Shown: positions 5,470 through 29,774 of the stretch, piece by piece
Position numbering within the stretch: position 1 is the stretch's first letter
Layout: each line of letters opens with the position of its first letter
Source of the DNA: Rebecca billardiae RCC1528
Taxonomy: Eukaryota; Protista; Haptophyta
Assembly (NCBI GenBank): GCA_965240325.2
Contig: OZ251247.1
Location: forward strand, 930,001 to 994,000
DNA length: 64,000 nucleotides
Direction of reading: 5' to 3'
Translations under genes and position numbers: made by a program
Notes under the pieces: generated by a model
Seen by the model: only the letters and a program-made list of their open reading frames with translations
Told to the model about the DNA's origin: nothing
Databases searched by the model: none

Positions 5470-5762
5470 ACGCCGCCCGCCTCGTCCCGCCCGCCCCGTC
5501 CCGTGCGCCCGCGCGCGCCACACGCGCGCAGCCCGCTTGCAGACGAGCTCATCACCGCGGCGATGCGCGTGGCGCGACACGGCCGGGCTGCTGCTGGGGC
5601 TGCGCGCCCGGCGCGACGCGGCTGCCTGCCGAGCCGATCGCAGCGCCGCGCCTCGCCGCCTCCGCGGCGGGTGGCGGCGGCGGCGGCGGTGGCGCGTGCG
5701 CGCCGCCCGCGCCCGCGCGCGTGTTCGCCGAGGGCGCACACCGGACGCCGAGTACGGGCGGT
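5470..5762 (+). pseudogene. Displaced, degenerate fragment of the last intron/exon of the multi-domain glycan gene
   Basis: Matches about 28893-29190 (CCCGCTCGCAGACGAGCTC...GCGATGCGCGT...ACACGGCCGGGCTGCTGCT...GAGTACG) with small indels. Confidence 0.7.
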
Positions 5763-6154
5763 CGCCCTCAACATTGTACTGCCTCTCATAGAGCGGATCG
5801 TCAGACCGTTAAAAACTGCCGGATGCCATAAATATTACCCCAATACTACTATCTCGCCTGCCTGAGCTGTGTGCGACTGTGCGTCTCTTATTCTTAGTAA
5901 ACTTTATGCAAATGGGTGGAGTACCTGTCTGGTACTCATAATACTCACTGGGGAATCGCACCTGCTTATGAAAACTGGCAACCGATTTGGGCGCCAGAAT
6001 ATGATGTCATTGTTGCGTCCCAGACGCCCAAGGCTTCTCACAAAGTCATCAATGAACGCGCTCGAGCCTCGAACGAGCTCGTGGCCGATCGCAGGCTCAT
6101 CATTTGCCAGGGGCCGCCGCCATCAATCACGCGCGCTCCCCCTTACGCCCGAGC

Positions 6155-9100
6155 ATGTGGCTCTTCTGCGGCAAGAATCCCTGCGGCACGCAAGCCGGTG
6201 TGCGCTCCAGTGACGAGGAGGAGCGTGGCGACGACGGCGCGCCCGAGGCACCGCCCGATGCCCGCGCCACGCTCGTCCAAGATGGCGCCGAGCCGAGCGA
6301 CGCGGCCGCGGGCGGCGACGACGGCGCGCGGCGGGGGGTGCGCGAGCGGCTCGCGGGCTGGGGCGCGGGGCGGTGGCTGCTCGTCGTCGGCGCCGCGTGC
6401 AGCGCTGTCCTCATCACCGGCGCAGCGTACCACTGGCGGCACCACATCAAGGGCTCGCTCAGCCGGCTGCAGCAGCGAGGGACGGCGGACGTGCCCGAGG
6501 ATGCGCGCTGCCTCGGGCGCGTGGGGCGGCAGGACGGGCAGTGGCTCATGGCGCCGGGCTCGACGGTCGAGCACGCTGCGCGCTGGGCCTTTGTGTTGGA
6601 CGCGTCCATCCTCGTCCTCGCCGTCGCCGCGCTGCTGCTGCTGCGCGCGTGGAAGAGCCCGGATGCGGCCGCGTCCACGGCGAAGAGCCTCTTCTCGGCG
6701 GCCATGTCCGCGTTCGACCTGTTCACAGACGCGCTGCTGGCGTCGCAGTGGTGGCGGTGCGCGCACCGGCTGTGGGCGGGCCTCGCCTTCGTCTTCACCG
6801 CCGCGGGCGCGCTGCCCACGCTCCAAGTCGCGCGCGCCGCGGCAGAGGTGGCCGCGCTGCCGCCCGATGCTTACGAGTTTGACCGCAAAGAGGTGGAAGA
6901 GCGGCTGCGCGACGCAAAGGCGCTCGAGGCGACGGTGGAGAGCGCGCCGCAGACGTACCTGCAGGGGTACGCGATGCTGCGCATCGGCGCCGTGCACGCC
7001 ACGCCGCTGGCGCTCGCCTCGCTGCTCTTCTCCGCCTCGATGATTGGCCACCACACGTACGTGTACACCATCAGCAGCGCGCTTGATTTTGCTGGTGGTC
7101 GGCCCACCGTGCAGTGGTGGAGCGTGACCGTGCCCGTGGTCGGCTGGACGGTGGGCGTGGACGACCTGGCGTGCCGCGTGGGCACGGTGATGTCCGTGCT
7201 GTGCCGCGCGCTGACGCACGGCCTCTTCGCCTGCGCGTTCCACAGCTGGCTGCTGGCGGCGCTCTCGGCGGCGGCGCTCGCGCTGGTCGCCTCCGTGCGC
7301 TACAGCGGCCACCTCAAGGTCATGGGTGCACTCGAGCGCGGAGGGCAGCTGGCGGCCTGGCGGAGCGCGGCGTGGGAGGCGGGCATCGTGTACGCCGCCG
7401 TGGGCATGGTCGACCTGAGCTCGGCGGGGTGGCTCGCGCACACGGCGCCCACCCACGTCCTGCTCGGCTGCGCGGAGGCCGCGCTGGCGGTGGCCGCGCT
7501 GCGCTGGCCGTCCGCGTGGCGCGAGGCGCAGAGCGCGCCTGCGCTGGCGGCACTCGCGTGGGCGTGGGGCTGCGCGTGGGTGGCGCACAAGGCCGTCGTC
7601 GTGCGCTTGCTGCAGCTCAAGGCAGATCCAGTGGTCGTCAGCCTCATGTGTGCGCGCGCGCGCGTGGCGACGACGTGGCGCCTGCCGCGGCGGGCTCGGG
7701 CGCGCGCGCGGCGGCGGGCGGGCGGCGCGGCCGCGGGGCGCTGTGCCAGCGGCGCGTGCGGCGCGCTCGCGTGTGCACGGGCGGGCACGCATCGCACGCG
7801 CAAGCTCGACACCCACTCACGCCCCCGCCGCGCGCCCGCTCCTTCCGCCGCGCCTCCCGCAGTTCCAACGGGATCGGCGACGCTGGCGCCACTGCCATCG
7901 CGGACGCCGTGCGCCACAGCCGCTCCCTGCAGAGGCTTGTCCTCCAGTACGTGTGCACGCGCGTGGGGGCGGGGGCGGGGGTGGCGCGGAGGGGCGGGGG
8001 TGGGTGAGCGGGTGCCAGCTGGGGCATGCGCTGCGGAAGCATGTCGAGCGCGCCGCGCCGCGCGCGCGCGCGCCGCGCGCCCTCGCGCGGTGATGTCCGA
8101 GCGCGCGCCGCGCGCGCGGCCGCGTCGGCATGCTCGGGCGCGCGCGCGGCGGCGGGCGGGCGGCGCGGCCGCGGGCGGGCGGGCGGCGCGGCCGTGGGGC
8201 GCTGTGCCAGCGGCGCGTGCGGCTCGCTCGCGCGTGCACGGGCGGGCACGCGCCGCGCGCGCGCGCTCGACACCCACTCACGCCCCCGCCGCGCGCCCGC
8301 CCCTCCCGCCGCGCCTCCCGCAGTGGCAACGGGATCGGCGACGCTGGCGCCACTGCCATCGCGGACGCCGTGCGCCACAGCCCCTCCCTGCAGGAGCTCC
8401 ACCTCGAGTACGTGTGCACGCGCGCGGGAGCGGGCACGGGGGTGGCGCGGAGGGGTGGGGGTGGGTGGGCGGGTGCCAGCCGAGGCATGTGCTGCGGACG
8501 CACGTCGAGCGCGGCGCGCCGCGCGCGCGCGCGCCGCGCGCCCTCGCGCGGTGATGTCCGAGCGCGCGCCGCGCGCGCGGCCGCGTCGGCGGGCTCGGGC
8601 GCGCGCGCTGCGGCGGGCGGGCGGCGCGGCGGCGGGCGGGCGGGCGGCGCGGCCGTGGGGCGCGCTCGCGTGTGCTCGGGCGGGCTCGCACCGCGCGCGC
8701 GCACTCGACACCCACTCACGCCCGCGCCGCGCGCCCGCCCCTCCCGCCGCGCCTCCCGCAGTTTCAACGGGATCGGCGACGCTGGCGCCACTGCCATCGC
8801 GGACGCCGTGCGCCACAGCCGCTCCCTGCAGGAGCTTGTCCTCTAGTACGTGTGCACGCGCGCGGGGGTGGGCGCGGAGGTGGCGCGGAGGGGTGGGGGT
8901 GGGTGGGTGGGCGCCAGCTGGGGCATGTGCTGCGGACGCACGTCGAGCGCTGCGCGCCGCGCGCGCGCGCGCCGCGCGCCCTCGCGCGGTGATGTCCGAG
9001 CGTGCGCCGCGCGCGCGGCCGCGTCGGCGTGCTCGGGCGCGCGCGCTGCGTCGGGCGCGGCCGCGGTGGCGGGGCGCTGTGGCAGCGGCGCAGGCGGCGC

Positions 9101-9290
9101 GCTCGCGCGTGCTCGGGCGGGCACGCTGCGCGTGCGCGCGCTCTGCCCTTGCTCACGCCCCAGCCGCGCGCCCGACACCCGTCCCCCACTGCGCGCCTCC
9201 CGCAGTTACAATCGCCTCAGCGAGGCGGGCAAGAAGGCGGTGCGCGAGGCGTGGGAGCAGAGCGGCAAGGAGGGCAGGCTGGAGCTGTGA
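6155..9290 (+). CDS. XK/Xkr-like multipass membrane protein fused to a C-terminal RI-type LRR array, paralogue A (3 LRR cassette exons)
   Basis: Exons: 6155-7647, 7863-7946, 8324-8407, 8762-8845, 9206-9290 (TGA). All introns are GT-AG and phase 2. XK-family-like motifs are FDLFTDALLA and LEATVESAPQTYLQGY, with many hydrophobic helices. The repeat unit is xNxIGDAGATAIADAVRHSRSLQxLxLx. An apparent TAG at 8844-8846 is removed by splicing (TA|T = Tyr), which supports the model. Confidence 0.85.
7648..9205 (+). repeat. Tandem intron-exon repeat, ~438-461-bp period (LRR cassette array A)
   Basis: Exon starts at 7863, 8324, 8762 and 9206; the introns are near-identical to one another. Confidence 0.9.
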
Positions 9291-10828
9291 TGTGCAGCTC
9301 CGGTGCCGCCGAGAGGCGATGGGTGGGGAGACTGCTTGCGTCGGCAGGGCCTGGGACGAGCACCGGCCCGCCCGCGCTGCGCTGGCGCTGCTCGGGCAGT
9401 GGCAGTGCATGCAGTCGTCGGTGATGAGGGCACCGCGCGGCGCCGTGGGCGGCGCCGCCCAACCGACGAGCGCTTGCGCGCTGCACGGCGGCAGTGACGA
9501 CGGCCGGCATCGTTCGAGAGCGGCGGGCGTAGACGGCGCGGGCGCAGGTCGGCGCGCACAAGTGGAGGCGTCGTTTTTCATTCGATCGGCGTGGCGCCGT
9601 GCGCAGTGCTCGCCTCCGGCTTCCGACTCGACTCGACTCGGCCCAGCGCGCCGCGGGCTCGGCCGGCGCCGCGGCGCGGCGCGCGGTATTGGCCGAGCTC
9701 GCACGCCGCACGGCTACGGTGACGACGGGCTCGGCGGAAAGTGGGTGTCGTCAGCGTTGGCGAAGCTCTGCGCGCACGGGTGGAGGCGTTTCGACCAGGT
9801 CACATGGCGTGGAGCCGTGCTCGCTCGCCGGCTTCGGAAATCGACTCGGTCGGCGCTCAGTCAGCAGCGCGTGCGCGTGGTCGCGCAGAAGAGGCCGCGC
9901 GTGGCGACGCCGCAGCTGCGCAGTGCTGATGTGAGGAGTAGTCATCGCAGCGACGAAACAGCCCAGCAGTGCCGCCCCGCTTCGAATCGGCTTCGATCTC
10001 GCTCGGAGCTGATCGACACCCGGACGATCACGATCGGACCTGTCGTCAGCGTTAATGGTGGTGCGCTCGGCAGCACCACTAGCTGGTGCCGTTCGAAACA
10101 GTGCGCACGACGGCGCACGCAGCAAGCAGCTAGTAAGATGGCGCGGCCGAGCAAGCCGTGTGCATGCAGCTACAGCCTACAGGATCGCGCAGTGGGCGCG
10201 CGCCGCACCACCACTGCTGACCGCACCGCGACGCACGCCCCGCAGAGCCCGGAGCTCGTCGTCAGCGTGACGCCGGCACGGCAGCGCCCACAGAATCCGC
10301 CAGCTCGTCCGGGGCGAGGCGAGCGCCGTCGATTCGCGCCGCGGCACCGAGCTCAGCCGCTCCCGCTGCAGCCGCCGCCGCCGTGAGACTTCACTCGTGC
10401 GACGTCTCCAACGACGTGCTGCGCGAGCTGCACCCTGAAATCGGAGGGGGCCGCCGGCGCGCCATGCTCGCGCGCCTCCCAGCACAGTGAGGATCTGCAT
10501 CGCAGTGGGTCAGCGTGTGCGAAGTGCTGTGCACGTCCACGCGCATGGTGCCACACGACACGACGCTCAATCATCGTCAAGGACAGCCAGCCGCCGCGAG
10601 TAACGCCGCCATCGTTGCTCGGCGGCGGAGAAGAGTACCAGACAGACGTGTGTCCTCTGGTTTTGATGACGATGCTGAAATAAAAGCCGCCCGGGCGCCG
10701 CATCCAAAGTGCCGGAGCCACGGGTTTAAATTGCATGATGATTTACAAGTGCGGCATCTCCGCCGCCGCCGCAGGAGCCAGGACGCAGCGATCCGGTGTG
10801 ACGCTGGCCCACACGCGACGAATCGACG

Positions 10829-11605
10829 ATGGCCGTCATCACCAGCATCAGCTCGGGGGCGGTGGGCGCCGCTGCGCCCACCGCGCGCCCGCACGCGCGT
10901 GCGTGGCGGGGAACGCCGTGGCGAGGGACGCCGTGCCGGGGCGACGTCGGCCCGCGCCCCGCGCCGTGCGCCGCCTCGGCGCCCGCGCGTCGCCCTGTGG
11001 CTGTGGCAGCGCGTGCGCGGCTGCTGCTGCTGCCGCTGCTGCTCGGCGGCGCGACGGGCGCGGCGGCGGCTGCGGCGGCAGCAGCGCCGCCACCGACGTA
11101 CGCGGCGGGGGCGGACGCGCTGCTGCTCGACGACGTGCACGCAGGCGACTTTGTGCTCGGCGCCCGCGCCAGCCTCGCCACCGCACCGCCGCCGCCGGCC
11201 CCGTCCGCGCGCTGCCTCGCCGCTGTAGCAGCGATGCCGCGCGCGCCCGCCGCCGACGGCGGCGGCCCCGGCGCCGGCGGCGACGGGGCGGGGCGCGCGC
11301 GCCCCGCGCCGCTGCTCCCGCCCGAGTGCGCGTGGCAGGCGGCCGCGCTGTGGGCGTTCCCCGCCTCCGGGGTGGGCTGGGTGGGCGCGCTGCTGCAGAG
11401 GGCGGCGGGCTGGGCGGTGGGGGTGGCGCCGGGCGCGGGGAGGGGCGCGGGCGCGGCGGGGCGGCAGGGCGGGCGGACGCGCGGGTGCGAGCACCGCGCG
11501 CTCGCCATCGTCGCCGAGTCCACCGCCACGCCACACGCGGTGCTGCGCCACTGGGCGGGCGCCAACAGGGCGCGCGCCCTCACGCACGCGGCGCCGCGCG
11601 GGCTG

Positions 11606-11644
<39 letters not shown>

Positions 11645-12195
11645 TGGGCGGAGCTGCCGCCGGTGCAGCCGCGCTCGGCGCGCAACATCCCGTGGCACGG
11701 CGCGCAGTCCGAGGCGCTCGCGCCGCACGGCACCGCGCACGCAGCCATCAGGCAAGCCGCGCGAGCGCGCCGCGCCGCCGCCGCCGCCTCAGCCGCGCCG
11801 CGCCCCGCGCGCGGCTGCGGCAGCTCAGCAGCGCGCGGCCGCCTGCCAACCGAGCGCGCGCGTGCCCCTCCGCCCGGACACCCACACCCCCCGCGCGCCA
11901 CGCGCCCCCGCAGCCGCCACCTCGTTGAGTGCAGCGCGTGGCGCCCCGCGCGCGCCCTGCTCGTGGAGCGCTGTCCGTACGCGGCGATCGGCGCGCTGCT
12001 CGGCGCACACGCACACGCGGGGGGCGGCGGCGCGGAGGGCGCGGAGGGCGGGGGGGGCGGTGTTGAGGATGCGGCGGCGGGGGGCTCGCTCGAGCCGGTG
12101 GACGCGGAGGCGACCGCGCTCGAGCTCGCGGCCGACTACGCGGCCGCGTGGGCGAGGTGGGTGCGCACCGCCCGCTGCTGCTGTGCTGCTGCGCT
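10829..12195 (+). pseudogene. 3'-truncated duplicate of the multi-domain glycan gene (sulfotransferase-like part only)
   Basis: Near-identical to 22435-23795. Similarity stops within intron 2, where unrelated sequence begins. Confidence 0.75.
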
Positions 12196-12231
12196 GCTGT
12201 GTGGAAGCACTGTCTGTGGCGCGTGGCACTG

Positions 12232-14600: not shown

Positions 14601-15284
14601 GGCGGCCTAGTAGTAGTGCCCCGCCGTGAGTCCGCGGCACGGCCGTGGCCGCCCTGGTGCCCGTACCCGTGCTGAGTAGTAGATAAGTCCCGCGCGGCGC
14701 ACGCGCGCGTCGTAACGGTCATGATGTCGCGTCTTCGCGCGGGCCAAATCACGGGCTGCGTGAATCAGTGGCGGTTCGAGCGAGCAGCTAATGAGCAGCC
14801 AGTAGTCGCGTCGTCGTAGTTGCTGCTGCGCCGCGGCTTGACGATAACAACACGCGACGCGCGCCATATCGTCGCTGGCGCGCAGTGTTCGCAGCGGCGA
14901 CCTTGTTGACGATGCGACTGCGACTACGATATATATATTGTGCGCGGCATCGTCAGCACTCCCGACCGATGTTCAAAACAACGCGCGGTCGAAGACGCTG
15001 CACGAGAAGCGCGCGCGACCTGGCCAGCGTGTGCGGACGACGTCCCGCGGCCGGGCGAGGCGCCTCGGAGTTAGTACTGCAGTACATACCATAGCGTCGT
15101 GCGCCACTGCCGTGGCGACCCACCATCGGGCGCTCATGCTCGTCGGCCTACGAGCCGCCTCCGGCCACGAGGGTCGCCGCCGCGGCCCGCGAGACGGTAA
15201 CGCCCTGCTGCTCACTGCGCGCACAAACTAGCGTACATCGCACCGCAATATGGGGGTATGTATCGGCCACAACCGCCCGACCCG

Positions 15285-15575
15285 CCGCCCGCCTCGTCCC
15301 GCCCGCCCCGTCCCGTGCGCCCGCGCGTGCCGCGTGCGCGCAGCCCGCTTGCAGACGAGCCGCCGTCACCGCGGCGATGCGCGTGGCGCGACACGGCCGG
15401 GCTGCTGCTGGGGCTGCGCGCCCGGCGCGACGCGGCTGCCTGCCGAGCCGATCGCAGCGCCGCGCCTCGCCGCCTCCGCGGCGGGTGGCGGCGGCGGCGG
15501 CGGTGGCGCGTGCGCGCCGCCCGCGCCCGCGCGCGTGTTCGCCGAGGGCGCACAGGACGCCGAGTACGGGCGGTC
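15285..15575 (+). pseudogene. Second displaced fragment of the last exon of the glycan gene
   Basis: Paralogous to 5470-5762 and to about 28893-29190. Confidence 0.7.
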
Positions 15576-15966
15576 GCCCTCAACATTGTACTGCCTCTCA
15601 TAGAGCGGATCGTCAGACCGTTAAAAACTGCCGGATGCCATTAATATTACCCCAATACTACTATCTCGCCTGCCTGAGCTGTGTGCGACTGTGCGTCTCT
15701 TATTCTTAGTAAACTTTATGCAAATGGGTGGAGTACCTGTCTGGTACTCATAATACTCACTGGGGAATCGCACCTGCTTATGAAAACTGGCAACCGATTT
15801 GGGCGCCAGAATATGATGTCATTGTTGCGTCCCAGACGCCCAAGGCTTCTCACAAAGTCATCAATGAACGCGCTCGAGCCTCGAACGAGCTCGTGGCCGA
15901 TCGCAGGCTCATCATTTGCCAGGGGCCGCCGCCATCAATCACGCGCGCTCCCCCTTACGCCCGAGC

Positions 15967-18900
15967 ATGTGGCTCTTCTGCGGCAAGAACCCCTGCGGCA
16001 CGCAAGCCGGCGTGCGCTCCAGTGACGAGGAGGAGCGTGGCGACGACGGCGCGCCCGAGGCACCGCCAGATGCCCGCGCCACGCTCGTCCAAGATGGCGC
16101 CGAGCCGAGCGACGCGGCCGCGGGCGGCGACGACGGCGCGCGGCGGGGGGTGCGCGAGCGGCTCGCGGGCTGGGGCGCGGGGCGGTGGCTGCTCGTCGTC
16201 GGCGCCGCGTGCGGCACTGTCCTCCTCACCAGCGCAGCGTACCACTGGCGGCACCACATCAAGGGCTCGCTCAGCCTGCTGCAGCAGCGAGGGACGGCGG
16301 ACGTGCCCGAGGATGCGCGCTGCCTCGGGCGCGTGGGGCGGCAGGACGGGCAGTGGCTCATGGCGCCGGGCTCGACGGTCGAGCACGCTGCGCGCTGGGC
16401 CTTTGTGTTGGACGCGTCCATCCTCGTCCTCGCCGTCGCCGCGCTGCTGCTGCTGCGCGCGTGGAAGAGCCCGGATGCGGCCGCGTCCACAGCGAAGAGC
16501 CTCTTCTCCGCGGCCATGTCCGCGTTCGACCTGTTCACAGACGCGCTGCTGGCGTCGCAGTGGTGGCGGTGCGCGCACCGGCTGTGGGCGGGCCTCGCCT
16601 TCGTCTTCACCGCCGCGGGCGCGCTGCCCACGCTCCAAGTCGCGCGCGCCGCGGCAGAGGTGGCCGAGCTCGCCGCGGAAGAGGTGGCCGCGGAGCCACC
16701 CGATGCTGAGGTGGAGTATCACCGCAAAGAGGCGGAAGGGAAGCTGCGCGACGCGAAGGCGCTCGAGGCGACGGTGGAGAGCGCGCCGCAGACGTACCTG
16801 CAGGGGTACGCGATGCTGCGCATCGGCGCCGCGCACGCCACGCCGCTGGCGCTTGCCTCGCTGCTCTTCTCCGCCTCGATGATTGGCCACCACACGTACG
16901 TGTACACCACCAGCAGCGTGGCTGTTGATGCTGCTGGTCGGCCCGCCGTGCAGTGGTGGAGCGTGACCGTGCCCGTGGTCGGCTGGGCGGTGGGTTTGGA
17001 CGACCTGGCGTGCCGCGTGGGCACGGTAGCGTCCGTGCTGTGCCGCGCGCTGACGCACGGCCTCTTCGCCTGCGCGTTCCACAGCTGGCTGCTGGCGGCG
17101 CTCGCTGCGGCGGCGCTCGCGCTGGTCGCCTCCGTGCGCTACAGCGGCCACGTCGAGGTCATGGGTGCACTCGAGCGCGGAGGGCAGCTGGCGGCCTGGC
17201 GGAGCGCGGCGTGGGAGGCGGGCATCGTGTACGCCGCCGTCGGCATGGTCGACCTGAGCTCGGCGGGGTGGCTCGCGCGCACGGCGCCCACCCACATCCT
17301 GCTCGGCTGCGCGGAGGCAGCGCTGGCGGGGGCCGCGCTGCGCTGGCCGTCCGTGTGGCGCGAGGCGCAGAGCGCGCCGGCGCTCGCGGCACTCGCGTGG
17401 GCGTGGGGCTGCGCGTGGGTGGTGCACAAGGCCGTCGTCGTGCGCTTGCTGCAGCTCAAGGCAGATCCAGTGTTCGTCGACCTCAGGTGTGCGCGCGCGC
17501 GCGTGGCGACGACGCGGCGCCTGCCGCGGCGGGCTCGGGCGCGCGCGCGGCGGCGGGCGGGCGGCGCGGCAGTGGGGCGCTGTGCCAGCGGCGCGTGCGG
17601 CGCGCTCGCGCGTGCTCGGGCGGGCACGCATCGCGCACGTGCGCTTGACACCCACTCACGCCCCCGCCGCGCGCCCGCCCCTCCCGCCGCGCCTCCCGCA
17701 GTGACAACCAGATCGGCGACGCTGGCGCCACTGCCATCGCGGACGCCGTGCGCCACAGCCGCTCCCTGCAGACGCTTGTCCTCGGGTACGTGTGCACGCG
17801 CGCGGGGGCGGGGGCGGGGGTGGCGCGGAGGGCCGGGGGTGGGTGAGCGGGCGCCAGCCGGAGCATGTGGTGCTGCGGACGCACGTCGAGCGCGGCGCGC
17901 CGCGCGCGCGCGCGCCGCGCGCCCTCGCGCGGTGATGTCCGAGCGTGCGCCGCGCGCGCGGCCCGTCGGCGGGCTCGGGCGCGCGCGCGGCGGCGGGCGC
18001 GCGCGCGGCGGCGGGCGGGTGGCGCGGCCGCGGGGCGCTGTGGCAGCGGCGCGTGCGGCGCGCTCGCGCGTGCTCGGGCGAGCACGCATCGCGCGCGCGC
18101 GCTCGACACCCACTCACGCCCGCGCCGCGCACCCGCCCCTCCCACCGCGCCTCCCGCAGTGACAACCAGATCGGCGACGCTGGCGCCACTGCCATCGCGG
18201 ACGCCGTGCGCCACAGCCGCTCGCTGCAGACGCTCTGGCTCGAGTACGTGTGCACGCGCGCGGGGCCGGGCGCGGGGGTGGCGCGGAGGGGCGGGGGTGG
18301 GTGGGCGGGCGCCAGCCGGGGCATGTGCTGCGGGCGCACGTCGAGTGCGGCGCGCCACGCGCGCGCGCGCCGCGCGCCCTCGCGCGGTGATGTCCGAGCG
18401 TGCGCCGCGCGCGCGGCCGCGTCGGCGGGCTCGGGCGCGCGCGCGGCGGCGGGCGGGCGGCGCGGCCGCGGGGCGCTGTGGCAGCGGCACGGGCGGCGCG
18501 CTGGCGCGTGCACGGGTGGGCATGCGCCGCGCGCGCGCGCCCCACACCCACTCACGCCCCCACCGCGCGCCCGCCCCTTCCGCCGCGCCTCCCGCAGTTC
18601 CAACGCGATCGGCGACGCTGGCGCCACCGCCATCGCGGACGCAGTGCGCCACAGCCGCTCCCTGCAGTGGCTCCGCCTCAGGTACGTGTGCACGCGCGCG
18701 GGGGCGGGCGCGGGGGTGGCGCGGAGGGGCGGGGCTGGGTGGGCGGGCGCCAGCCGGGGCATGCGCTGTGGACGCACGTCGAGCGCGGCGCGCCGCGCGC
18801 GCGCGCGCCGCGCGCCCTCGCGCGGTGATGTCCGAGCGTGCGCCGCGCGCGCGGCCGCGTCGGCGGGCTCGGGCGCGCGCGCGGCGGCGGGCGGGCGGCG

Positions 18901-20877
18901 CGGCCGCGGGGCGCTGTGGCAGCGGCGCGTGCGACGTGCTCGCGCGTGCTCGGGCGAGCACGCGCCGCACGCGCGCGCCCGACACCCACTCACGCCCGCG
19001 CGGCGCGCCCGCCCCTCCCGCCGCGCCTCCCGCAGTGACAACCAGATCGGCGACGCTGGCGCCACTGCCATCGCGGACGCCGTGCGCCACAGCCGCTCGC
19101 TGCAGGAGCTCTGGCTCGAGTACGTGTGCACGCGCGCGGGGGCGGGCGCGGGGGTGGCGCGGAGGGGCGGGGGTGGGTGGGCGGGCGCCAGCCGGGGCAT
19201 GCGCTGTGGACGCACGTCGAGCGCGGCGCGCCGCGCGCGCGCGCGCCGCGCGCCCTCGCGCGGTGATGTCCGAGCGTGCGCCGCGCGCGCGGCCGCGTCG
19301 GCGGGCTCGGGCGCGCGCGCTGCGACGCGCGGGCGGCGCGGCCGCGGGGCGCTGTGGCAGCGGCGCGTGCGGCTTGCTCGCGCGTGCTCGGGCGGGCACG
19401 CGCCGCGCGCGCGCGCTCGACACCCACTCACGCCCGCGCGGCGCGCCCGCCCCTCCCGCCGCGCCTCCCGCAGTACCAACCAGATCGGCGACGCTGGCGC
19501 CACTGCCATCGCGGACGCAGTGCGCCACAGCCGCTCCCTGCAGGGGCTTGACCTCCGGTACGTGTGCACGCGCGCGGGGGCGGGGGCGGGGGTGGCGCGG
19601 AGGGGCGGAACTGGGTGGGCGGGCGCCAGCCGGGGCATGCGCTGTGGAAGCATGTCGAGTGCGGCGCGCCGCGCGCGCGCGCGCCGCGCGCCATCGGGCG
19701 GGCGGTGATGTCCGAGCGCGCGCCGCGCGCGCGGCCGCGTCGGCGGGCTCGGGCGCGCGCGCTGCGGCGGGCGGGCGGCGCGGCCGCGGGGCGCTGTGGC
19801 AGCGGCGCGTGCGGCGCGCGTGCACGGGCGGGCACGCATCGCACGTGCGCGCTCGACACCCACTCACGCCCGCGCCGCGCGCCCGCCCCTCCCGCCGCGC
19901 CTCCCGCAGTCGCAACCAGATCGGCGACGCTGGCGCCACCGCCATCGCGGACGCCGTGCGCCACAGCCGCTCCCTGCAGGAGCTCTGGCTCAAGTACGTG
20001 TGCACGCGCGCGGGGGCGGGGGCGGGGGTGGCGCGGAGGGGCGGGGGTGGGTGAGCGGGTGCCAGCTGGGGCATGCGCTGCAGAAGCATGTCGAGTGCGG
20101 CGCGCCGCGCGCGCGCGCGCCGCGCGCCCTCGCGCGGTGATGTCCGAGCGTGCGCCGCGCGCGCGGCCGCGTCGGCGGGCTCGGGCGCGCGCGCGGCGGC
20201 GGGCGGGCGGCGCGGCCGCGGGGCGCTGTGGCAGCGGCGCGTGCGGCGCGCTCGCGCGTGCTCGGGCGGGCACGCGCCGCGCGCGCGCGCCCTACACCCA
20301 CTCACACTCGCGCGGCGCGCCCGCCCCTCCCGCCGCGCCTCCCGCAGTTCCAACCAGATCGGCGACGCTGGCGCCACTGCCATCGCGGACGCCGTGCGCC
20401 ACAGCCGCTCCCTGCAGACGCTTGGCCTCGGGTACGTGTGCACGCGCGCGGGGGCCGGGGCGGGGCTGGCGTGGAGAGGCGGGGGTGGGTGGGTGGGCGC
20501 CAGCCGGGGCATGCGCTGCGGACGCACGTCGAGCGCGGCGCGCAGCGCGCGCGCGCGCCGCGCGCCCTCGCGCGGTGATGTCCGAGCGTGCGCCGCGCGC
20601 GCGGCCGCGTCGGCGGGCTCGGGCGCGCGCGCGGCGGCGGGCGGGCGGCGCGGCCGCGGGGCGCTGTGGCAGCGGCGCGTGCGGCTTGCTCGCGCGTGCA
20701 CGGGCGGGCACGCTGCGCGCGCCGCGCTCTGCCCTTGCTCACGCTCCCGCCGCGCGCCCGACACCCGTACCCCGACCGCTCGCCTCCCGCAGTTCCAATG
20801 ACCTCAGCGAGGCGGGCGAGAAGGCGGTGCGCGAGGCGTGGGAGCAGAGCGGCAAGGAGTACGGGCTGGATGTGTGA
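15967..20877 (+). CDS. XK/Xkr-like multipass membrane protein fused to a C-terminal RI-type LRR array, paralogue B (7 LRR cassette exons)
   Basis: Exons: 15967-17486, 17702-17785, 18160-18243, 18598-18681, 19036-19119, 19474-19557, 19910-19993, 20348-20431, 20793-20877 (TGA). Every internal exon is 84 nt, bounded by CCCGCAG|T and NN|GTACGT. The XK-like motifs are the same as in paralogue A. Confidence 0.85.
17487..20792 (+). repeat. Tandem intron-exon repeat, ~438-bp period (LRR cassette array B)
   Basis: Successive exon-start spacings are 458, 438, 438, 438, 436, 438 and 445 bp. Confidence 0.9.
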
Positions 20878-22434
20878 TGTGCACCTCCGCTGCTGCCGAG
20901 AGGCGATGGGTGGGGAGACTGCTTGCGTCGGCAGGGCGTGGGACGAGCACCGGCCCACCCGCGCTGCGCTGGCGCTGCTCGGGCAATGGCAGTGCATGCA
21001 GTCGTCGGTGATGCGGGCACCGCGCGGCGCCGTGGGCGGCGCCGCGCAACTGACGAGCGCTCGCGCGCCGCACGGCGGCAGTGACGACGGCCGTCATCGT
21101 TCGAGAGCGGCGGGCGTAGACGGCGCGGGCGCAGGTCGGCGCGCACAAGTGGAGGCGTCGTTTTCCATTCGATCGGCGTGGCGCCGTGCGCAGTGCTCGC
21201 CTCCGGCTTCCGACTCGACTCGACTCGGCCCAGCGCGCCGCGGGCTCTGCCGGCGCCGCGGTGCGGCACGCGGTATTGGCCGAGCTCGCGCGCCGCACGG
21301 CTACGGTGACGACGGGCTCGGCGGAAAGCGGGTGTCGTCAGCGTTGGCGAAGCTCTGCGCGCGCACGGGTGGAGGCGTTTCGACCAGGTCACATGGCGTG
21401 GAGCCGTGCTCGCTCGCCGGCTTCTGACTCGACTTGGTCCGGGCGCTCAGTCAGCTAGCTAGCAGCACTGCGTGCGCGTGGTCCCGCAGAAGAGGCCACG
21501 CGTGGCGACGCCGCAGCTGCGCAGTGCTGATGTGAGGAGTAGTCATCGCAGCGACGAAGCAGCCCAGCAGTGCCGCCCCGCTTCGAATCGGCTTCGATCT
21601 CGCTCGGAGCTGATCGACACCCGGACGATTGGCACGATCGCGGACCTGTCGTCAGCGTGGTGCGCCGGGCACCACTAGCTGGTGCCGTTCGAAACAGTGC
21701 ACGACGGCGCACTACGCAAGCAGCTAGTAAGATGGCGCGGCCGAGCAAGCCGTGTGCATGCAGCTACAGCCTACAGGATCGCGCAGTGCGGGCGCGCGCC
21801 GCACCACCACTGCTGACCGCACCGCGACGCCACGCGGCCCCGAGCCGAGCTCGTCGTCAGCGTGACGCCGCACGGCAGCGCCCACAGAATCCGCCAGCTC
21901 GTCAGGGGCGAGGCGAGCGCCGTCGATTCGCGCCGCGGCACCGAGCTCAGCTGCTCCCGCTGCAGCCGCCGCCGCCGTAAGACTTCACTAGTGCGACGTC
22001 TCGTCCAACGACGTGCTGCGCGAGCTGCACCCTGAAATCGGAGGGTCGGCCGCCGGCGCGCCATGCTCGCGCGCCTCCCAGCACAGTGAGGATCTGCATC
22101 GCAGTGGGTCAGCGTGTGCGAAGTGCTGTGCACGTCCACGCGCATGGTGCCACACGACACGACGCTCAATCATCGTCAAGGACAGCCAGCCGCCGCGAGT
22201 AACGCCGCCATCGTTGCTCGGCGGCGGAGAAGAGTACCAGACAGACGTGTGTCCTCTGGTTTTGATGACGATGCTGATCGAAATAAAAGCCGCCCGGGCG
22301 CCGCATCCAAAGGGCCGGAGCCACGGGTTGAAATTGCATGATGATTTACATCAAGTGCGGCATCTCCGCCGCCGCCGCAGGAGCCAGGACGCAGCGATCC
22401 GGTGTGACGGTGGCCCACACGCGACGAATCGACG

Positions 22435-23211
22435 ATGGCCGTCATCACCAGCATCAGCTCGGGGGCGGTGGGCGCCGCTGCGCCCACCGCGCGCCCGCAC
22501 GCGCGTGCGTGGCGGGGGACGCCGTGGCGAGGGACGCCTCGCAGGGGCGACGTCGGCCCGCGCCCCGCGCCGTGCGCCGCCTCGGCGCCCGCGCGTCGCC
22601 CTGTGGCTGTGGCAGCGCGTGCGCGGCTGCTGCTGCTGCCGCTGCTGCTCGGCGGCGCGACGGGCGCGGCGGCGGCGGCGGCGGCCGCAGCGCCGCCACC
22701 GACGGGGGCGGCGGGGGCGGACGCGCTGCTGCTCGACGACGTGCACGCGGGCGACTTTGTGCTCGGCGCCCCCGCCAGCCTCGCCACCGCACCGCCGCCG
22801 CCGGCCCCGTCCGCGCGCTGCCTCGCCGCGGTGGCAGCGATGCCGCGCGCGCCCGCCGCCGACGGCGGCGGCCCCGGCGCCGGCGGCGAAGGGGCGGGGC
22901 GCGCGCGCCCCGCGCCGCTGCTCCCGCCCGAGTGCGCGTGGCAGGCGGCCGCGCTGTGGGCGTTCCCCGCCTCGGGGGTGGGCTGGGTGGGCGCGCTGCT
23001 GCAGAGGGCGGCGGGCTGGGCGGTGGGAGTGGCGCCGGGCGCGGGGAGGGGCGCGGGCGCGGCGGGGCGGCAGGGCGGGCGGACGCGCGGGTGCGAGCAC
23101 CGCGCGCTCGCCATCGTCGCCGAGTCCACCGCCACGCCGCACGCGGTGCTGCGCCACTGGGCGGGCGCCAACAGGGCGCGCGCGCTCACGCACGCGGCGC
23201 CGCGCGGGCTG

Positions 23212-23247
<36 letters not shown>

Positions 23248-24775
23248 TGGGCGGAGCTGCCGCCGGTGCAGCCGCGCTCGGCGCGCAACATCCCGTGGCA
23301 CGGCGCGCAGTCCGAGGCGCTCGCACCGCACGGCACCGCGCACGCAGCCATCAGGCGAGCCGCGCGAGCGCGCCGCGCCGCCGCCTCTGCCTCAGCCGCG
23401 CCGCGCCTCGCGCGGCTTCGGCAGCTCAGCAGCGCGCGGCCGCCTGCCAACCGCGCGCGCGCGTGCCCCTCCGCCCGGACACCCACCCCCCGCGCGCCGC
23501 GCGCCCGCGCAGCCGCCACCTCGCCGAGTGCAGCGCGTGGCGCCCCGCGCGCGCCCTGCTCGTGGAGCGCTGTCCGTACGCGGCGATCGGCGCGCTGCTC
23601 GGCGCACACGCACACGCGGGGGGCGGCGGCGCGGAGGGCGCGGGGGGCGGGGGGGGCGGTGTTGAGGATGCGGCGGCGGGGGGCTCGCTCGAGCCGGTGG
23701 ACGCGGAGGCGACCGCGCTCGAGCTCGCGGCCGACTACGCGGCCGCGTGGGCGAGGTGGGTGCGCACCGCCCGCTGCTATGTGCTGCTGCGCTGCCCCGC
23801 TGCACACGCCGCGGCCGCCCGCCGCACCGCTCTGGCTCGTCCCGGCTGCCGCGCGCTGCCGCCCACACGGCCGCGCACGCCACGCACTCAGTGCGCCCGC
23901 GCGTGTGTGCGCGCGTGTGCGCGCGCGCCCGCAGCCACAAGGCGCTGCTGCGCGAGGCGGAGGAGGCGGCGGTGCGCGCGCGCGCGGAGGCGGCGCGCGC
24001 GGCGCTGGGCGCGGGGCGGGGCGGCGCGCGCGCGCCGCCCGACGCCGCCACCGCCGCGCTGCTCGGCGCGGACGCGCGGCGCGCGCGGCACGCCGCGCTG
24101 AGCGGCGCGGACACGCGCGGCGCGGGCGGTGCCGTGCTGCCGCTGAGCCACCTGCTCGAGCCGCCGGGCGGCGGCGGCGAGGGCGGCGGGTGCGCGGCCG
24201 CGCTCGCGCGCGCGCTGGCGTGGCTGGGCGCACCGCCTCCGCCGGGCGAGGCGTGGGGCGCGGAGGTGTGGGGGCGCGCGCACAGCGCCGCCGCCGCCAA
24301 CGCAAGTGGCGGCGCCGCGGAGGCGGATGCGGCGGCGGCGCGCTGGCTGCCGCGCGCGCGCGCCGCGTGCGCCGCGCTGCCGGCGCCGGCGGTGCTGCGC
24401 AGCGGCGCGCCCGCGCCCGCACCCGCGCCGCTCGCGCCCGCCTCCGCCCGCCCCGCCGCCGCCCCCGCCGCCCCCGCGCGCGGCGGCGTGTGGCGCGGGC
24501 GCGCGCTCACGTGCCGCGTGTGGGGCGCGCTCGGCCACATCGCGGCGCAGCTCGGCCACACGCCGCCGCACGGCCACCGGTGCGGGCGCGGCGCGGACGC
24601 GCGGGCGTGGGCGCGGCGGTGCGGACGGCTGCGGGGTCGGCCCCTCGCCCTTGCAGGCCGTTGCGTGCGCTGCGCGGGCGCGGCCGTGCGCGCCGGGTGC
24701 AGCCGCTGCCCGCGCGGCTCACGGTGCGCTGCGCCCTCCGCCCCCGCTGCCGCCGCTACCGCTGCCTGCGGCCGC

Positions 24776-24808
<33 letters not shown>

Positions 24809-27800
24809 CTGATTGGCTGGCGCTGTGCTGCTGCTGCCCTCTGATTGGCCGGCGCTGTGCTGCTGCTGCTGCGCAGCTGCCAGCAGCGCGACGAGCTGCT
24901 GCTGGCGCTGGGCAGGAGGGCGGCCCCCGCCTCGCCCGACGGGCGCACTGTGCTACTCACCTCGACCAACCTGCAGGTGCAACACGGCACACGGCACACT
25001 GCCTAGCGCACACCCCAGCATCACACCCCGGCACAGCGCGCACTCGGGTGGCGGCGTTGTTGAGCGCACGCCGCCCGCCCGCCGCCCGCCCGCGCGCGCG
25101 CGTGCCGCGCCGCTGCCGCGTGTGCGCCTGTGCAGTACCTGGACGTGTGGCTCAACTGGCTGCTCGCCGTGCGCACGCACGCGCCCCCGCTCGCGGCCGC
25201 GGTGGTGGTGGGCGCGCTCGACTGGCGCGCGCACGACGCGCTGCGCGCGCTGCACGCGCCCGCCTTCCCGCTGCTGCCGCGGTACCGGCGCGGCACCCTG
25301 CGCGCGGCGGAGGGGCAGCGCGCGCTGGACGGCGTGTGGGTGGAGCGCGGCGAGGTGACGCTGACCCTCCTCCGCGCGGGGCTGGGCGTGCTCCTCTGCG
25401 ACACAGACGCCGTGTTCACACGGGACGCCCTCACGCCGCTGCTCAGCCTGAGCGCGCACGCGCACGCGCACGCGGGCGCGGCCTCCGCCACGGCCCCTCT
25501 CGCCGTGGGCGCGGACGCGGTCGCCTCCGCCGGCACCTTCCCCCGCTGGGCCGCGCGCGCGCTGGGCGGCAGCAGCGCGGTGATGGGCCTGGTCCTGCTC
25601 GCGCCCACGCGCGCGGCAACAGGGCTGCTGGGCGCGGCGCAGAGGCTGGCGCACGCGGTGGGGGACGACCAGACGGCGTTCAACGCGCAGCTCGCCGCGG
25701 CGGAGGAGGTGCTCGTGGCGGACGCGCCGCTCGGCCGCGCGCGCGCCGCCGCGCCGGCCGCGCCGCCGGTGGCGCGGCTGGTGCGAGCGACGACGCGCGG
25801 CGCCGCGGCGCCCTGGCCGCACGGCGGAGGGCGCGCGGGCGGCTGGGCGGTGCGCGTGCTCATCCTGCCAGAGGCGCTCGTCGTGCGCAACTGCACGCCA
25901 AGGCTGCGCACGCTGCGCGCGGCGGCGGCGGCGGCGCGCGGCGGCGGCTCGGCGCGCGGCGGCGGCGGCGACGCGGCGGGTGCGGCGGGCGGCGCGCTGG
26001 GCGTCCATTACGTCGACGATGACGGCGGCGGCGCGGGCGTGCACGGCGGGGGCGGCGCCGGCGCCGCCGCCGGCTTGCGGCTCTCGAGCAGTGGCACCGG
26101 TGGCGATGGTGGCAGCCGCAATGGCAGCAGCAGCAATAGCGGCAGCGGCAGCAGCGGCCGCTTCTCGAGCGCGCTGGTGGCGCACTGCCTCTCCTCCAAG
26201 TCCGGGGTGGCCAAGTGGGAGCAGCTCGAGGCGGCGGGGCTGTGGCGCTGCCCGGGCGCGTGGGCGCGCGAGTGGAGCGGCGCGGGCGCGCGCGAGCCCG
26301 CGCGCCGCGCGCCGGGCCTCGCGGCGCCCGCGGCGGCGCCGGCCGGCGGCGGCGCGCTCGGCGCGCCGCCGCGCGCCGCCGCGCTCGGCGCGCCGCTCGC
26401 GGCGGCAAACATCAGCGCGGAGGGCGGCGCGCCGCCCGAGCCCGGCACGCCGGACGCCGAGCCCGCCGCGTTTGGCGCGGGCCTGGACCGCGTGCTCGCC
26501 GCCTCGCGCGTCGCCGCCTCGGTGGTGGTCTGCTCCGAGCTGCTGGCTGCACCCGCGCCGCTGGCGGAGGGCGGCGGCGCGGCGGCGGGCGCGGCGGCGG
26601 CGGCGGCGGCGGCGGCGGAGGCGGTGCGCAGCGGGGCGCGCGGCGGCGGCGGCGCGGCGGGAGCTGCCGCCGCCGGCCTGCTCGAGGCCGGCGGGGCGAC
26701 CGGCGGCGGCGGCGCGTCGGCGGAGGCGGCGGGCGGCGGCGCCGTGCCCGCGGCCGAGTGGTGGCGCGCGCTCGGCGCGCTCGGCGCCGGCCTCGGCCGC
26801 GGCGCGGCGGGCGCGGGCGTGGCGCTCGAGCTCGTAGCGGTGCGCTGGGCGGGCGTGGGCGAGGGCCCGGCCGAGTCGGCGGCGATCGACGGCGCGGCGG
26901 CGCGCGCGCTGCGCGCCGCGCTGCCCGCCGCGCACTCGGCCGCGCTGCCCGCCGTGCGCCTCGTGACGGTGCCGCGCGCCGCGGCCGCGCTCGGCGCGCC
27001 GCTCGGCGCGGCGGCGCCGAGCGCGCTCCTCAACGCGGGCGTGCGCCTCGCCACGTCGGAGCGCGTGCTGCTATGCAGCGCGGCCGTGCGCCTCGCGCCC
27101 GGGCTCTTCCGCGCGCTGCGCACGCTGCAGCGCGCGGGCGTCGGCCGCGCCGCGCACGTGCTCGGCGCGTGCGCGCTGCCCGGCGCGGCCGGCGCGGCCG
27201 CGCTGCGCGCCCTCACCGAGCGCGGCGCCGCGGCGGCGGCGGCGGCGGCGCGCTGCGGCCGGCTCGGCGCGCCGAGCGGCGCGGCGGGGATGCTGCTGCC
27301 GCGCGCGATGTGGGCGGCGGCGCGCGGCATGCCCGAGGGGCCCGTCGTGCAGCCGCACGCCGACCGGTGCGCGCGGCACCGCGCACCGCGCGCCGCGACA
27401 CACCGCGACCACGCGCCGCCGCCCTGCCCCGCCCGCTCACACTGCGCGCCCGCCGCGCCGCCGCCCGCCGCGCGCCGCGGCCGCAGCTACCTCGCGCACC
27501 GGCTGTCCGCGCGCGACGTGTCGGTGGGCTGGCTCGACTGCGGCGGCCTCGGCACGCAGCCGTGCGCGTACGCGCCGGGCGGCGCGGGCGGCGCGCGCTG
27601 GTGGCGCGTGGGCGCGGCCACGCTGCGCGAGCGCGACTCGGTGGTGGGCGCGCGCGCGCGGCACGTGGCCGAGCTCGCCGCCAACAGGCGCGCGCGCGAG
27701 GCGGCGGCGGCGCGCGCGCGCGCGGCGGCCGCGTCGGCGCGCGGCGGCGCGCCGCCCGACGCGAGCGGCCCCGCGAGCCCGACGCCCCCCGGCGGCGAGC

Positions 27801-29714
27801 CCGCGGCCATCGCGCCCGCGCTGCGCTCGGAGGTGGAGGTCGCCTTCCTGAGGCGCGCGCGCGCGGCCGCGGCGCTGGACGGCGCGTGCGCGTGGGGCGC
27901 GCTCGGGCGCGTGGCGCTGCGGCACACAGCGAGCTTCGACGCGCGCGCGGCCGAGGGCGCGGCGCCGGGCCCCAGCGCTGCAGCGGCGTCGGAGGGCGCG
28001 GTCTCGCTCGTGCAGGACGCAGCGCCCGCGCCAGAGGTCGAGGCGTGGGACACCACGGCAGGCGGCGCGGCACCGCCGACCGACCGCGGACCCGCCGCGG
28101 CGGCGGCGGGCGGCGCGGGCGCGCGCGGCGCCGCGGCTGCGCACGCGGAGGACGACGCGGGCGGCGCGGGCGGGTGCTGGTCGCGCGCGCGCGAGACTTC
28201 CGCGTACGCCGCGTGGGCCGCGGCGGGGCGGGTGCGCCGCGGGCGCGTGCTGCTGCGCGTGCGCGGGCCGCTGCCCGAGCGGCTGCTCGCGCTCGCGTCC
28301 GGCTGGGCGCTGGCGGACGCGCTCGCCGCCAAGCTCACGCTCGTGTGGGCGCCGGACGGCGCGTGCGGCGCGATGTACGACGACCTGCTCGAGCGCAACA
28401 CCTCCGCCTTCCTCGCCGTGCGCGCCGCGCCGCGCAGCCTGCGCCGGCGCAAGCGCGGCGGCGCGGCCGAGCGCGGCGGCGGCGCGCCGCGCTGGCGCGC
28501 GCTCGACGCGCGCGCGACAGGCGCGCCGCTCAGCGCGGCCGAGCTCGGGCTGCGCTCCGCCGCCGAGCCGCGCCACGGCGGGCCCGCCGCCCCCGCCGTG
28601 CGCCTCGAGATCAGCGCGGACGGCGCCATCCGAGTCGAGCCCGACGCGCTCGCGCCCGACGGCGCGCGGCTCGCCGACCGCGTCGGCCCCGCGGCGCTGG
28701 CGGTGCGGCTGGCGTGGCTCAGCCCGAGGCGCGCAGACCTGCTGTGCGCGCGGCGCCCGACGCGCGCCCGCGCACCGCCGCGCTGCCACGCGCGCGTCCC
28801 CCGCCACGCGTGACGCGCGCGGCGCGCACACGCCGCGCGCCACGACCCGTTGCCCGCCCGGCGCGCGCGCCGAGACCGCCGCCGACCGCCCGATGCGCCG
28901 CCCGCCTCGTCCCGCCCGCCCCGTCGCGCCCCGCCTGCGCGCGCCGCGCGCGCGCAGCCCGCTCGCAGACGAGCTCACCGCGGCGATGCGCGTGCGCGAC
29001 ACGGCCGGGCTGCTGCTCGGCGGAACGGCGCTCGGCTGCGCCCCCGGCGCGACGCGGCTGCCGCCCGTGCCGATCGCGGCGCCGCGCCTCGCCGCCTCCG
29101 CGGCGGGCGGTGGCGGCGGCGGCGGCGGCGCATGCGTGCCGCTCGCACCCGCGCGCGTGTTCGCCGTGTGCGCGCAGGACGACGAGTACGTGGCGCTGCG
29201 CCGAGCCCTGCAGCGGCAGCCGTGGCACCGCGCGGCGCGACGGCGCGGCGGCAGCGGTGCCGCCGAGCAGCACGCGTGCGCGCCGCCGGCCGGCCCGCGC
29301 CACGTCCAACGCCCTCGCGGCGGTGGCCGTGGCGCCCAAGCTGGCCCCAAGGTGTACACCCTGCGCTCCTTCCTGCCCGCCGAGTGGGGCCAGGACTGCA
29401 AGGCCGGCGTGGGGCGCGCGGGCAGCCCCACGTGCGCGCGGCTTCAGCTGCTGCAGCTCACGCTGCTCGCGCGCGCGCGCACGCTCCACCTCGCCGCGCC
29501 ACCGGCGTCGGCGCTCGCGCGCGCCGCCGCGCTGCTGTTTGCGGGCGTGCGCGGTGGTGGGGGCGCCGCGCTGCCGGGCGACGCGGAGGGCGGCGCGCTG
29601 CTCGTGCCCGGCGGGGGCGCGCCGACAGGCGGCGCGGACGGCGCGCGCGTCATCTGGCGCGCCGCCGCGCCCGGCGGGGACGCGCGCGTGACGCGCGACG
29701 CGTGTGGCCTCTGA
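22435..29714 (+). CDS. Large multi-exon, multi-domain glycan-modifying protein: WSCD-like sulfotransferase, nucleotide-diphospho-sugar transferase (PF03407-like), GT2-like and fucosyltransferase-like domains
   Basis: Approximate exons: 22435-23354 (GC donor), 23513-23755, 23935-24579, from 25136 (probable further intron near 27367-27486) to about 28743, and about 28958-29714. Motifs: LWAFPASGVGWVGALLQRAAG, LLVERCPYAAI, GLGVLLCDTDAVF, DDQTAFN, VAHCLSSKSGVAKWEQLEAAGLW, LLNAGVRLATSERVLL and GPLPERLLALASGWALADALAAKLTLVWAPDGACGAMYDDLLE. The start codon and some junctions are uncertain. Confidence 0.6.
24778..24905 (+). repeat. (CTG)n-rich microsatellite with a duplicated CTCTGATTGGC unit, probably intronic
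   Basis: Read directly from the sequence. Confidence 0.7.
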
Positions 29715-29739
29715 GCTCGACTGTGGCGCGCCGCGCGCT

Positions 29740-29774
<35 letters not shown>

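Follow-up and report, generated by a model that had tools for sequence, protein, structure and literature searches.

Why should each ligand-binding strand of a repeat protein be encoded in two halves on separate exons, and does such a layout generate diversity at the level of RNA or DNA? The question is raised by two paralogous genes in a stretch of 64,000 nucleotides from the haptophyte Rebecca billardiae RCC1528 (assembly GCA_965240325.2, contig OZ251247.1, positions 930,001 to 994,000 of the forward strand), referred to here as the window. Gene B (+ strand, 15967-20877) and its paralogue, gene A (+ strand, 6155-9290), each join an XK-related membrane domain to a series of leucine-rich repeats (LRRs) of the ribonuclease inhibitor (RI) type, with most repeats carried on cassette exons of 84 nt. 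A preliminary description had seen in the introns, which cut through the hypervariable beta-strand, a built-in source of combinatorial and junctional diversity. The cassettes share one anatomy and a tandem origin, show a pattern of selection in which the ligand face changes while the framework does not, and differ in number between the two genes. They probably represent a modular LRR array of the germline that arose by tandem duplication of exon plus intron, inherited its intron position, is spliced constitutively, and is diversifying at five ligand-face positions.

Anatomy of the split repeats

The two gene models consist of the following parts.

Gene B, 15967..17486 (+): exon 1, 506 codons plus 2 bases, an open frame from ATG; donor GTGTGC
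Gene B, 17487..17701 (+): intron 1, 215 nt, most of which (∼205 nt at the 3' end) has its homologue in the 3' part of the cassette introns
Gene B, 17702..20431 (+): cassette array of seven 84-nt phase 2-2 exons, each coding for one 28-aa RI-type LRR; exon starts at 17702, 18160, 18598, 19036, 19474, 19910 and 20348 (+); inter-cassette introns of 374, 354, 354, 354, 352 and 354 nt
Gene B, 20432..20792 (+): last intron, 361 nt, cassette-intron-like in its 5' part, distinct at its 3' end
Gene B, 20793..20877 (+): terminal exon, T + SNDLSEAGEKAVREAWEQSGKEYGLDV + stop (TGA), a C-terminal capping half-repeat
Gene A, 6155..7647 (+): exon 1, coding for the XK-related membrane domain, whose amino-acid sequence is 93% identical to that of gene B
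Gene A, 7863..8845 (+): cassette array of 84-nt phase 2-2 LRR exons at 7863-7946, 8324-8407 and 8762-8845, with introns of 377 and 354 nt
Gene A, 9206..9290 (+): terminal exon

A regular-expression scan of the window for 84-nt exons preceded by CCCGCAG and followed by GTACGT finds exactly ten, all on the + strand, seven in gene B and three in gene A. All ten comprise 28 codons, including the split codon, and are symmetric (phase 2-2), so that the loss or duplication of a cassette stays in frame, as the preliminary description had stated. Each of the ten also ends with xLxL plus two variable bases and begins with T plus xNx, again in agreement with that description, and the dinucleotides at their 3' ends (GG, GA, AG, GA, CG, AA and GG in gene B; CA, GA and TA in gene A) match those it listed. 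Both terminal exons (20793 and 9206) likewise start with T. Exon 1 of gene B codes for the multi-pass XK-related domain and then for the first LRR beta-strand (FVDL + AG|T), while exon 1 of gene A closes with the equivalent strand, VVSL + AT|T. The spliced frames are intact in both genes: that of gene B has 2193 nt and codes for 730 aa, that of gene A has 1830 nt and codes for 609 aa.

In every cassette the spliced unit reads SLQxLxLxxNxIGDAGATAIADAVRHSR, a 28-residue LRR with the conserved segment LxxLxLxxNxI, and it fits the RI-type pattern of LxxLxLxxN/CxL followed by an xxxGxxxLxxxL helix. The exon border falls in codon 7 of LxxLxLxxNxI at all 12 junctions. Each binding strand is therefore assembled from two exons, as had been claimed, the upstream one supplying positions 3, 5 and 7 and the downstream one positions 8 and 10; the terminal exon provides the last half-repeat. 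A single cassette exon (27 aa) matches NOD2 in the PDB (5irm, E 1.5e-6), RSP15 (radial spoke protein 15) and RI-like chains. In Pfam, where only single exons served as queries, the sole family matched by single cassettes is LRR_6, at 13.9-17.8 bits and thus below the cut-off of 23.4. LRRs of the RI type that lack a signal peptide and cysteine caps are typically intracellular. The LRR domain would accordingly be cytosolic, and it may sense a ligand and regulate the membrane domain.

The split codon can never be a stop, as the preliminary description had pointed out, given that NN|T is not a stop codon. The same fixed base removes the junctional diversity that had been proposed: the third base is always T, and the residue at the split codon is set by the upstream exon alone. 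Re-paired exons thus give no new junction residue, and only the pairing of positions 3, 5 and 7 with positions 8 and 10 can change. The fixed T needs no special selection, since the copies are young and share many other sites without variation, and since the T also abuts the acceptor.

Introns and the mode of splicing

All 12 introns of the two genes end in the acceptor CCTCCCGCAG, and the combination CCTCCCGCAG|T occurs 12 times in the window where 1.8 occurrences would be expected, a number reached by none of 100 shuffles. While this bears out the identical acceptors of the preliminary description, its identical GTACGT donors hold only in part; they follow all ten cassette exons, but intron 1 of both genes begins with GTGTGC. 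The introns of both genes all lie after the second codon base (phase 2), as had been reported, and have canonical GT..AG ends. Ten of the 12 introns have a branch-like CTCAC motif at -47, and the last intron of each gene has it at -54/-55, with a C/T-rich tract after the motif. Over both genes, intron lengths are 215, 374/377, 354 (five times), 352 and 360/361 nt, and the deviations from the modal 354 nt are not multiples of three, except for 360.

Divergence among the introns is about twice that of the exon framework, and a perfectly periodic 28-residue repeat is obtained only by splicing. The possibility that the intervening segments are themselves coding sequence was rejected in view of their non-3n length differences, the conserved splice and branch motifs, and a divergence greater than that of the framework. 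Long open frames do run through them on both strands, as is to be expected at ∼85% G+C. The segments are best read as introns that would be spliced out.

The five introns of exactly 354 nt have a length that is a multiple of three, and four of them (B_i3, B_i4, B_i5 and A_i3, numbered from the 5' end of genes B and A) would introduce no in-frame stop if retained. In each cassette intron (e.g. 19120-19473) a G-rich 5' arm pairs end to end with a C-rich 3' arm, giving a predicted fold of -273 kcal/mol, which is not significantly better than that of shuffles (z = -1.72).

Splicing of the mRNA is most likely constitutive, and each gene would then yield one full-length protein, with eight strands for gene B and four for gene A. 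Diversity could also be created at the RNA level, if cassettes were skipped stochastically or under regulation to give solenoids of varied length with chimeric strands at the new junctions. Splice variants of this kind are reported for the ROCO genes of brown algae (PMC11378527) and for human NLRs (PMC6642158). In the present genes any skip of an 84-nt, phase 2-2 cassette would be in frame, all donors and acceptors are interchangeable, and base pairing is possible between the G-rich 5' arm of each intron and the C-rich 3' arm of every copy, and could loop out exons. Against skipping, the cassette splice sites are all equally strong and share the branch-like motif, so that no exon is weak or otherwise marked for skipping, and the intron fold is no better than that of shuffled sequences. 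A selection device of the Dscam type was looked for, but among introns that are 92-97% identical no exon-specific selector is apparent and no docking/selector asymmetry is visible. In unicellular algae with short introns, moreover, intron retention predominates over exon skipping. Diversification by cassette skipping is, on balance, unlikely.

Selection and history of the array

Three classes of site were compared in gene B: the five hypervariable codons (positions 3, 5, 7, 8 and 10), the 69 framework positions of the exon, and the introns.

Hypervariable codons, gene B: mean pairwise difference 0.44; variable sites 11/15
Framework, gene B: mean pairwise difference 0.029; variable sites 4/69
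Introns, gene B: mean pairwise difference 0.056-0.067; variable sites 47-64 of ∼346

By Fisher tests, hypervariable codons differ from introns (p = 1e-5) and from the framework (p = 8e-8), and the framework differs from introns (p = 0.007). Pairwise codon differences within gene B fall into 0 synonymous and 58 nonsynonymous in the hypervariable codons, against 42 synonymous and 0 nonsynonymous in the framework. The corresponding Nei-Gojobori values for nonsynonymous (dN) and synonymous (dS) divergence are dN 0.73 and dS 0.10 for the hypervariable codons, and dN 0 and dS 0.118 for the framework. The Leu codons interleaved with the hypervariable codons vary only synonymously (CTT/CTC), which points to selection rather than to locally targeted mutation. 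Taken together, these differences bear the classic mark of strong diversifying selection on the concave (ligand) face of the LRRs, with the scaffold under strong constraint. Of the intron columns, too, about 80% show no variation among the gene B copies. The copies owe their regularity to common descent through tandem duplication, and the fixed T and the uniform splice sites do not count as independent observations.

For 17527-20760, Tandem Repeats Finder gives a period of 438, with 7.3 copies and 91% matches; the array is a tandem duplication of a 438-bp unit of exon plus intron. Only the 3' part of the cassette intron (∼205 nt) has a counterpart in intron 1, and the last intron shares the 5' part but diverges at its 3' end; partial matches of this kind are expected if the breakpoints of the duplicated unit lie inside the intron. 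The two genes themselves lie in the two copies of a tandem segmental duplication (self-megablast identity 93.4-93.5%).

4983-12197: copy that contains gene A, ∼7.2 kb
14772-23795: copy that contains gene B, ∼9.0 kb

The difference in length between the copies corresponds to about four 438-bp cassettes. Their flanks are 98.8% (5') and 96.5% (3') identical and intron 1 is 94% identical, while the two arrays differ in every ligand-face residue. Intron identities within gene B range from 89 to 97%, or from 92 to 97% if the divergent last intron is left out. The introns of gene A are 86-90% identical among themselves, and one of them, A_i2, is more similar to the introns of gene B (94-95%) than to those beside it. 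Over the first 100 nt from its 5' end, A_i2 has five derived variants in common with B_i7, and its 3' part has a variant otherwise seen only in intron 1. This mosaic implies that the ancestral gene was already multi-cassette, and that remodelling of the arrays took place at about the time of the gene duplication or later. The intron-intron recombination suggested in the preliminary description has thus taken place in evolution, as seen in the three versus seven cassettes and in the variants that A_i2 shares with B_i7. Among the seven units of gene B, 150 of 253 informative site pairs fail the four-gamete test (minimum number of recombination events, Rmin, 13).

No donor, stray, inverted or pseudo-cassettes were found by blastn and tblastn on both strands of the 64-kb window, where the only hits are the ten coding positions and the two terminal exons, all on the + strand. 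Close intron matches (at least ∼88% identity) are likewise restricted, within the window, to the two arrays; other matches are low-complexity GC repeats. An introner origin was rejected within the window, as the intron copies are confined to the two arrays. A periodicity of two cassettes (876 bp), prompted by the Trp at position 5 of B3, B5 and B7 (cassettes 3, 5 and 7 of gene B), was also dismissed, for the intron identities show no alternation.

Rearrangement might continue in somatic or clonal lineages and make this a contingency locus with VLR-like effects: through unequal exchange in mitosis or through single-strand annealing, the number and order of cassettes would change in clones, with receptor diversity between cells as the outcome. 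Direct repeats of ∼354 nt that are spaced 438 bp apart and are 92-97% identical make good exchange substrates, the paralogues are four cassettes apart although their flanks are 96.5-98.8% identical, and many site pairs among the units are incompatible. Somatic recombination has also been proposed for similar genes of brown algae (PMC3341825), but recombinants of this type are still unreported there (PMC11378527). In the assembly, moreover, both genes are complete and open, and the 64 kb hold neither a reservoir of donor cassettes nor inverted or dead cassettes, unlike VLR loci and the introns of Ectocarpus ROCO genes. A divergence of 3-8% has built up between the introns, which speaks against a very fast turnover, and a DNA-level switch of this sort seems distinctly unlikely. 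About equally improbable is a fast-switching recognition locus in which mitotic intron recombination, or stochastic cassette skipping brought about by pairing between introns, would give a mixed clonal repertoire of Xkr-linked LRR sensors. Were it real, it would be an unprogrammed diversity system, VLR-like or Dscam-like, in a unicellular alga, with a chimeric strand at each new junction.

That the array is an artefact of misassembled GC-rich tandem repeats, or that the genes are pseudogenes with leftover regularity, is very improbable. Tandem repeats and a G+C of 83% over 18-20 kb are hard to assemble, and no whole-protein homologue was found in large protein sets. Against this, the copies differ by 3-8% with variants and indels of their own and so are not collapsed duplicates, two independent paralogues have the same architecture, and both spliced frames are intact. 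The framework of gene B is without nonsynonymous change despite synonymous change, the XK-related domain scores above the Pfam threshold, and a distant relative also links an Xkr-like domain to an LRR tail (see below).

If the array is indeed a modular one of the germline, its history probably ran as follows. Two genes, each with an XK-related (Xkr-like) membrane domain and a C-terminal RI-type LRR solenoid, arose by recent duplication. The original cassette would have had a phase-2 intron inside the beta-strand, in the layout of vertebrate NOD/NLRC LRR exons, and all copies would have inherited its intron position, phase, donor, acceptor and first-base T. The 438-bp unit (84-nt exon plus ∼354-nt intron) would be gained and lost in tandem by unequal homologous recombination between near-identical introns, a germline process that probably still goes on. 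After duplication, selection held 23 framework codons and drove rapid amino-acid replacement at the solvent-exposed positions 3, 5, 7, 8 and 10 that flank the intron.

Some points weigh against this account. Splicing is predicted from the sequence and assumed to be constitutive; equal splice sites and symmetric exons would also permit skipping. The framework dS is based on four variable sites. The incompatibility between sites shows no decay with distance (PHI-like p = 0.67), and recurrent mutation in CpG-rich DNA of ∼85% G+C could therefore explain part of the mosaic, in place of gene conversion.

Known systems, relatives and neighbouring features

The layout of one repeat per exon has been described before in NOD/NLRC genes, in the ROCO genes of Ectocarpus and in Tetrahymena, and the idea of in-frame diversification is likewise in the literature. 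The present locus differs in its RI-type 84-nt cassettes in an alga, the very high identity of framework and introns, the lack of stray cassettes in the window, and the fusion to an XK-related domain. NOD/NLRC genes mostly code for one 28-aa LRR per exon, the exons being frame-preserving (Hoss et al. 2019, PMC6642158), and the same study notes the potential for in-frame exon skipping, draws an explicit parallel with VLRs, and records alternative splicing for NLRP3 (exon 5). The vertebrate NOD/NLRC genes (also NLRP and RNH1) share the RI-type LRR and the 28-aa repeat per exon with genes A and B. Their LRRs, however, are joined to NACHT rather than to an XK-related membrane domain, and in genes A and B, which belong to a GC-rich alga, the cassettes resemble one another much more closely (framework 97%, introns 92-97% identical). 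The likeness to NLRs is drawn at the level of a strand-interior intron.

Another parallel is offered by the ROCO genes of brown algae, which have one LRR per 72-bp exon, phase-2 introns, and a history of exon duplication and shuffling (Zambounis et al. 2012, PMC3341825; Teng et al. 2024, PMC11378527); the LRR-kinase and NB-ARC-TPR genes of these algae belong to the same comparison set. Recent ROCO paralogues have 13 versus 17 cassettes and positively selected residues on the concave face, splice variants are reported, and somatic recombination has been proposed and is still unconfirmed (PMC3341825, PMC11378527); the proposals made for these genes, of alternative splicing and somatic recombination, run along the lines of the preliminary description. 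The Ectocarpus ROCO genes thus resemble genes A and B in LRRs with exons of their own, in phase 2, in a gap in repeat number between paralogues (13 versus 17; here 3 versus 7), and in concave-face diversification, and their "type II" exons likewise start inside the strand. They differ in exon length (72 nt, coding for 24-aa repeats of another LRR class, against 84 nt and the RI type), in their partner domains, and in introns that contain extra, inverted or dead LRR exons, of which none were found in the 64-kb window here.

In Tetrahymena the LRR exons number ∼50,000 and are each exactly 90 bp long, and phase 2 accounts for more than 96% of introns (Xiong et al. 2019, PMC6564038); that study names the "junction" amino acid, to which one exon gives two bases and the following exon the third, and describes clonal expansion via unequal crossing-over. 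Fixed exon length and phase-2 introns are common to these arrays and to genes A and B, whereas the exon length (90 against 84 bp), the tens of thousands of exons, the ciliate host and the suggested part of retrotransposons are not. Lamprey VLR and insect Dscam share only the general logic of modular cassettes with genes A and B. VLR loci consist of an incomplete germline gene with banks of donor cassettes, while genes A and B are complete and have no donors in 64 kb. In Dscam one exon per cluster is chosen through docking-selector RNA pairing, while the cassettes here are consecutive structural repeats with indistinguishable introns. Fungal NLRs are said to offer another parallel, the WD40, ANK and TPR repeats described by Dyrka et al. 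in 2014 being reportedly near-identical, with a few hypervariable, positively selected surface positions and a repeat number that changes via unequal recombination. Those fungal repeats reportedly lie within single exons and have other folds, whereas the recombination substrate in genes A and B is mostly intron.

The locus as it stands is compatible with ordinary birth-and-death evolution of recognition genes in the germline. It offers an unusually clean case in which homology carried by introns would allow a repeat protein to gain or lose repeats and to combine its strands anew, with selection altering nothing but the residues that contact the ligand. It also brings into the phase-2 class of one LRR per exon an RI-type LRR that is linked to an Xkr-like membrane domain and belongs to an alga of very high G+C. 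What stands out is how clear the mark of selection is, and how unusual the partner domain. Exon skipping or clonal switching of copy number, should either prove true, would bear on the long-standing proposal of algal receptor diversity beyond the germline.

The partner domain is recognized by Pfam PF09815 (XK-related), for which exon 1 scores 31.8 bits in gene B and 29.5 bits in gene A (gathering cut-off 24.8), the match spanning only profile positions 121-237 of 337. An AlphaFold2 model of exon 1, made from a 6-sequence alignment, has a mean predicted local distance difference test score (pLDDT) of 49.5, too low for a fold search. Relatives are few: a word-based protein search with exon 1 gave no match at E <= 0.001, metagenome scans with exon 1 and with the 35-nt cassette core gave none, and exhaustive phmmer over 1.84 billion representatives found only four weak or partial relatives, none of them from R. 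billardiae. A distant relative (L001, a JGI 3300016802 contig of 1171 nt; 277-946) is ∼40% identical and joins Xkr-like C-terminal helices to one RI-type LRR, so that the Xkr-LRR fusion is not confined to the R. billardiae genome. Its terminal motif, LDLSRNGLSDESKSVVQQAW, resembles the tail of genes A and B, and it has an apparent frameshift near nt 830-855; it lends weak support to the joining of the two domains and to the gene model. Three others, on Logan contigs ERR14847148, ERR14847149 and ERR14847152 (L002:3061-3675, also L003 and L004), are 65-70% identical to the Xkr-like domain. Their residues 62-140 run directly into 386-477, residues 141-385 being missing, and no LRR cassette is detectable downstream; they represent a copy that is truncated or has an internal deletion, or else an error of gene calling. 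Between the paralogues, exon 1 (15967-17486 versus 6155-7647) has dN 0.037, dS 0.044 and dN/dS 0.83, with replacements and a 9-residue indel clustered in gene B residues ∼231-260 and ∼315-325. The membrane domain may be fast-evolving or under relaxed constraint.

Upstream of gene A, in a region of lower GC, lies a direct repeat of ∼1.39 kb (33-1422 and 3570-4958, 94.8% identity), which may represent the ends of a mobile element or another duplication. The regions 24000-30000 and 50000-56000 have 82-88% G+C and open frames of more than 1000 codons in several frames on both strands; the frames sampled there have no Pfam match. Two genes with RCC1-like repeats are present, at 42804-44648 (-) and 55033-57042 (+), with Pfam RCC1 matches of 6e-59 and 1.5e-41 and with WD40_RLD above its cut-off. 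The first is intronless and has a weak F-box-like match at its N-terminus, and the second includes a 108-bp tandem repeat (56097-56320) coding for GDSGQLGLG. A perfect (TA)88 microsatellite (58496-58672) stands amid very GC-rich DNA. Two long tandem arrays follow, the first (59683-61955) with a 110-bp unit in ∼20 copies, up to 97% matches and an A-rich strand, and the second (62005-64000) with a 208/421-bp unit that extends past the end of the window.

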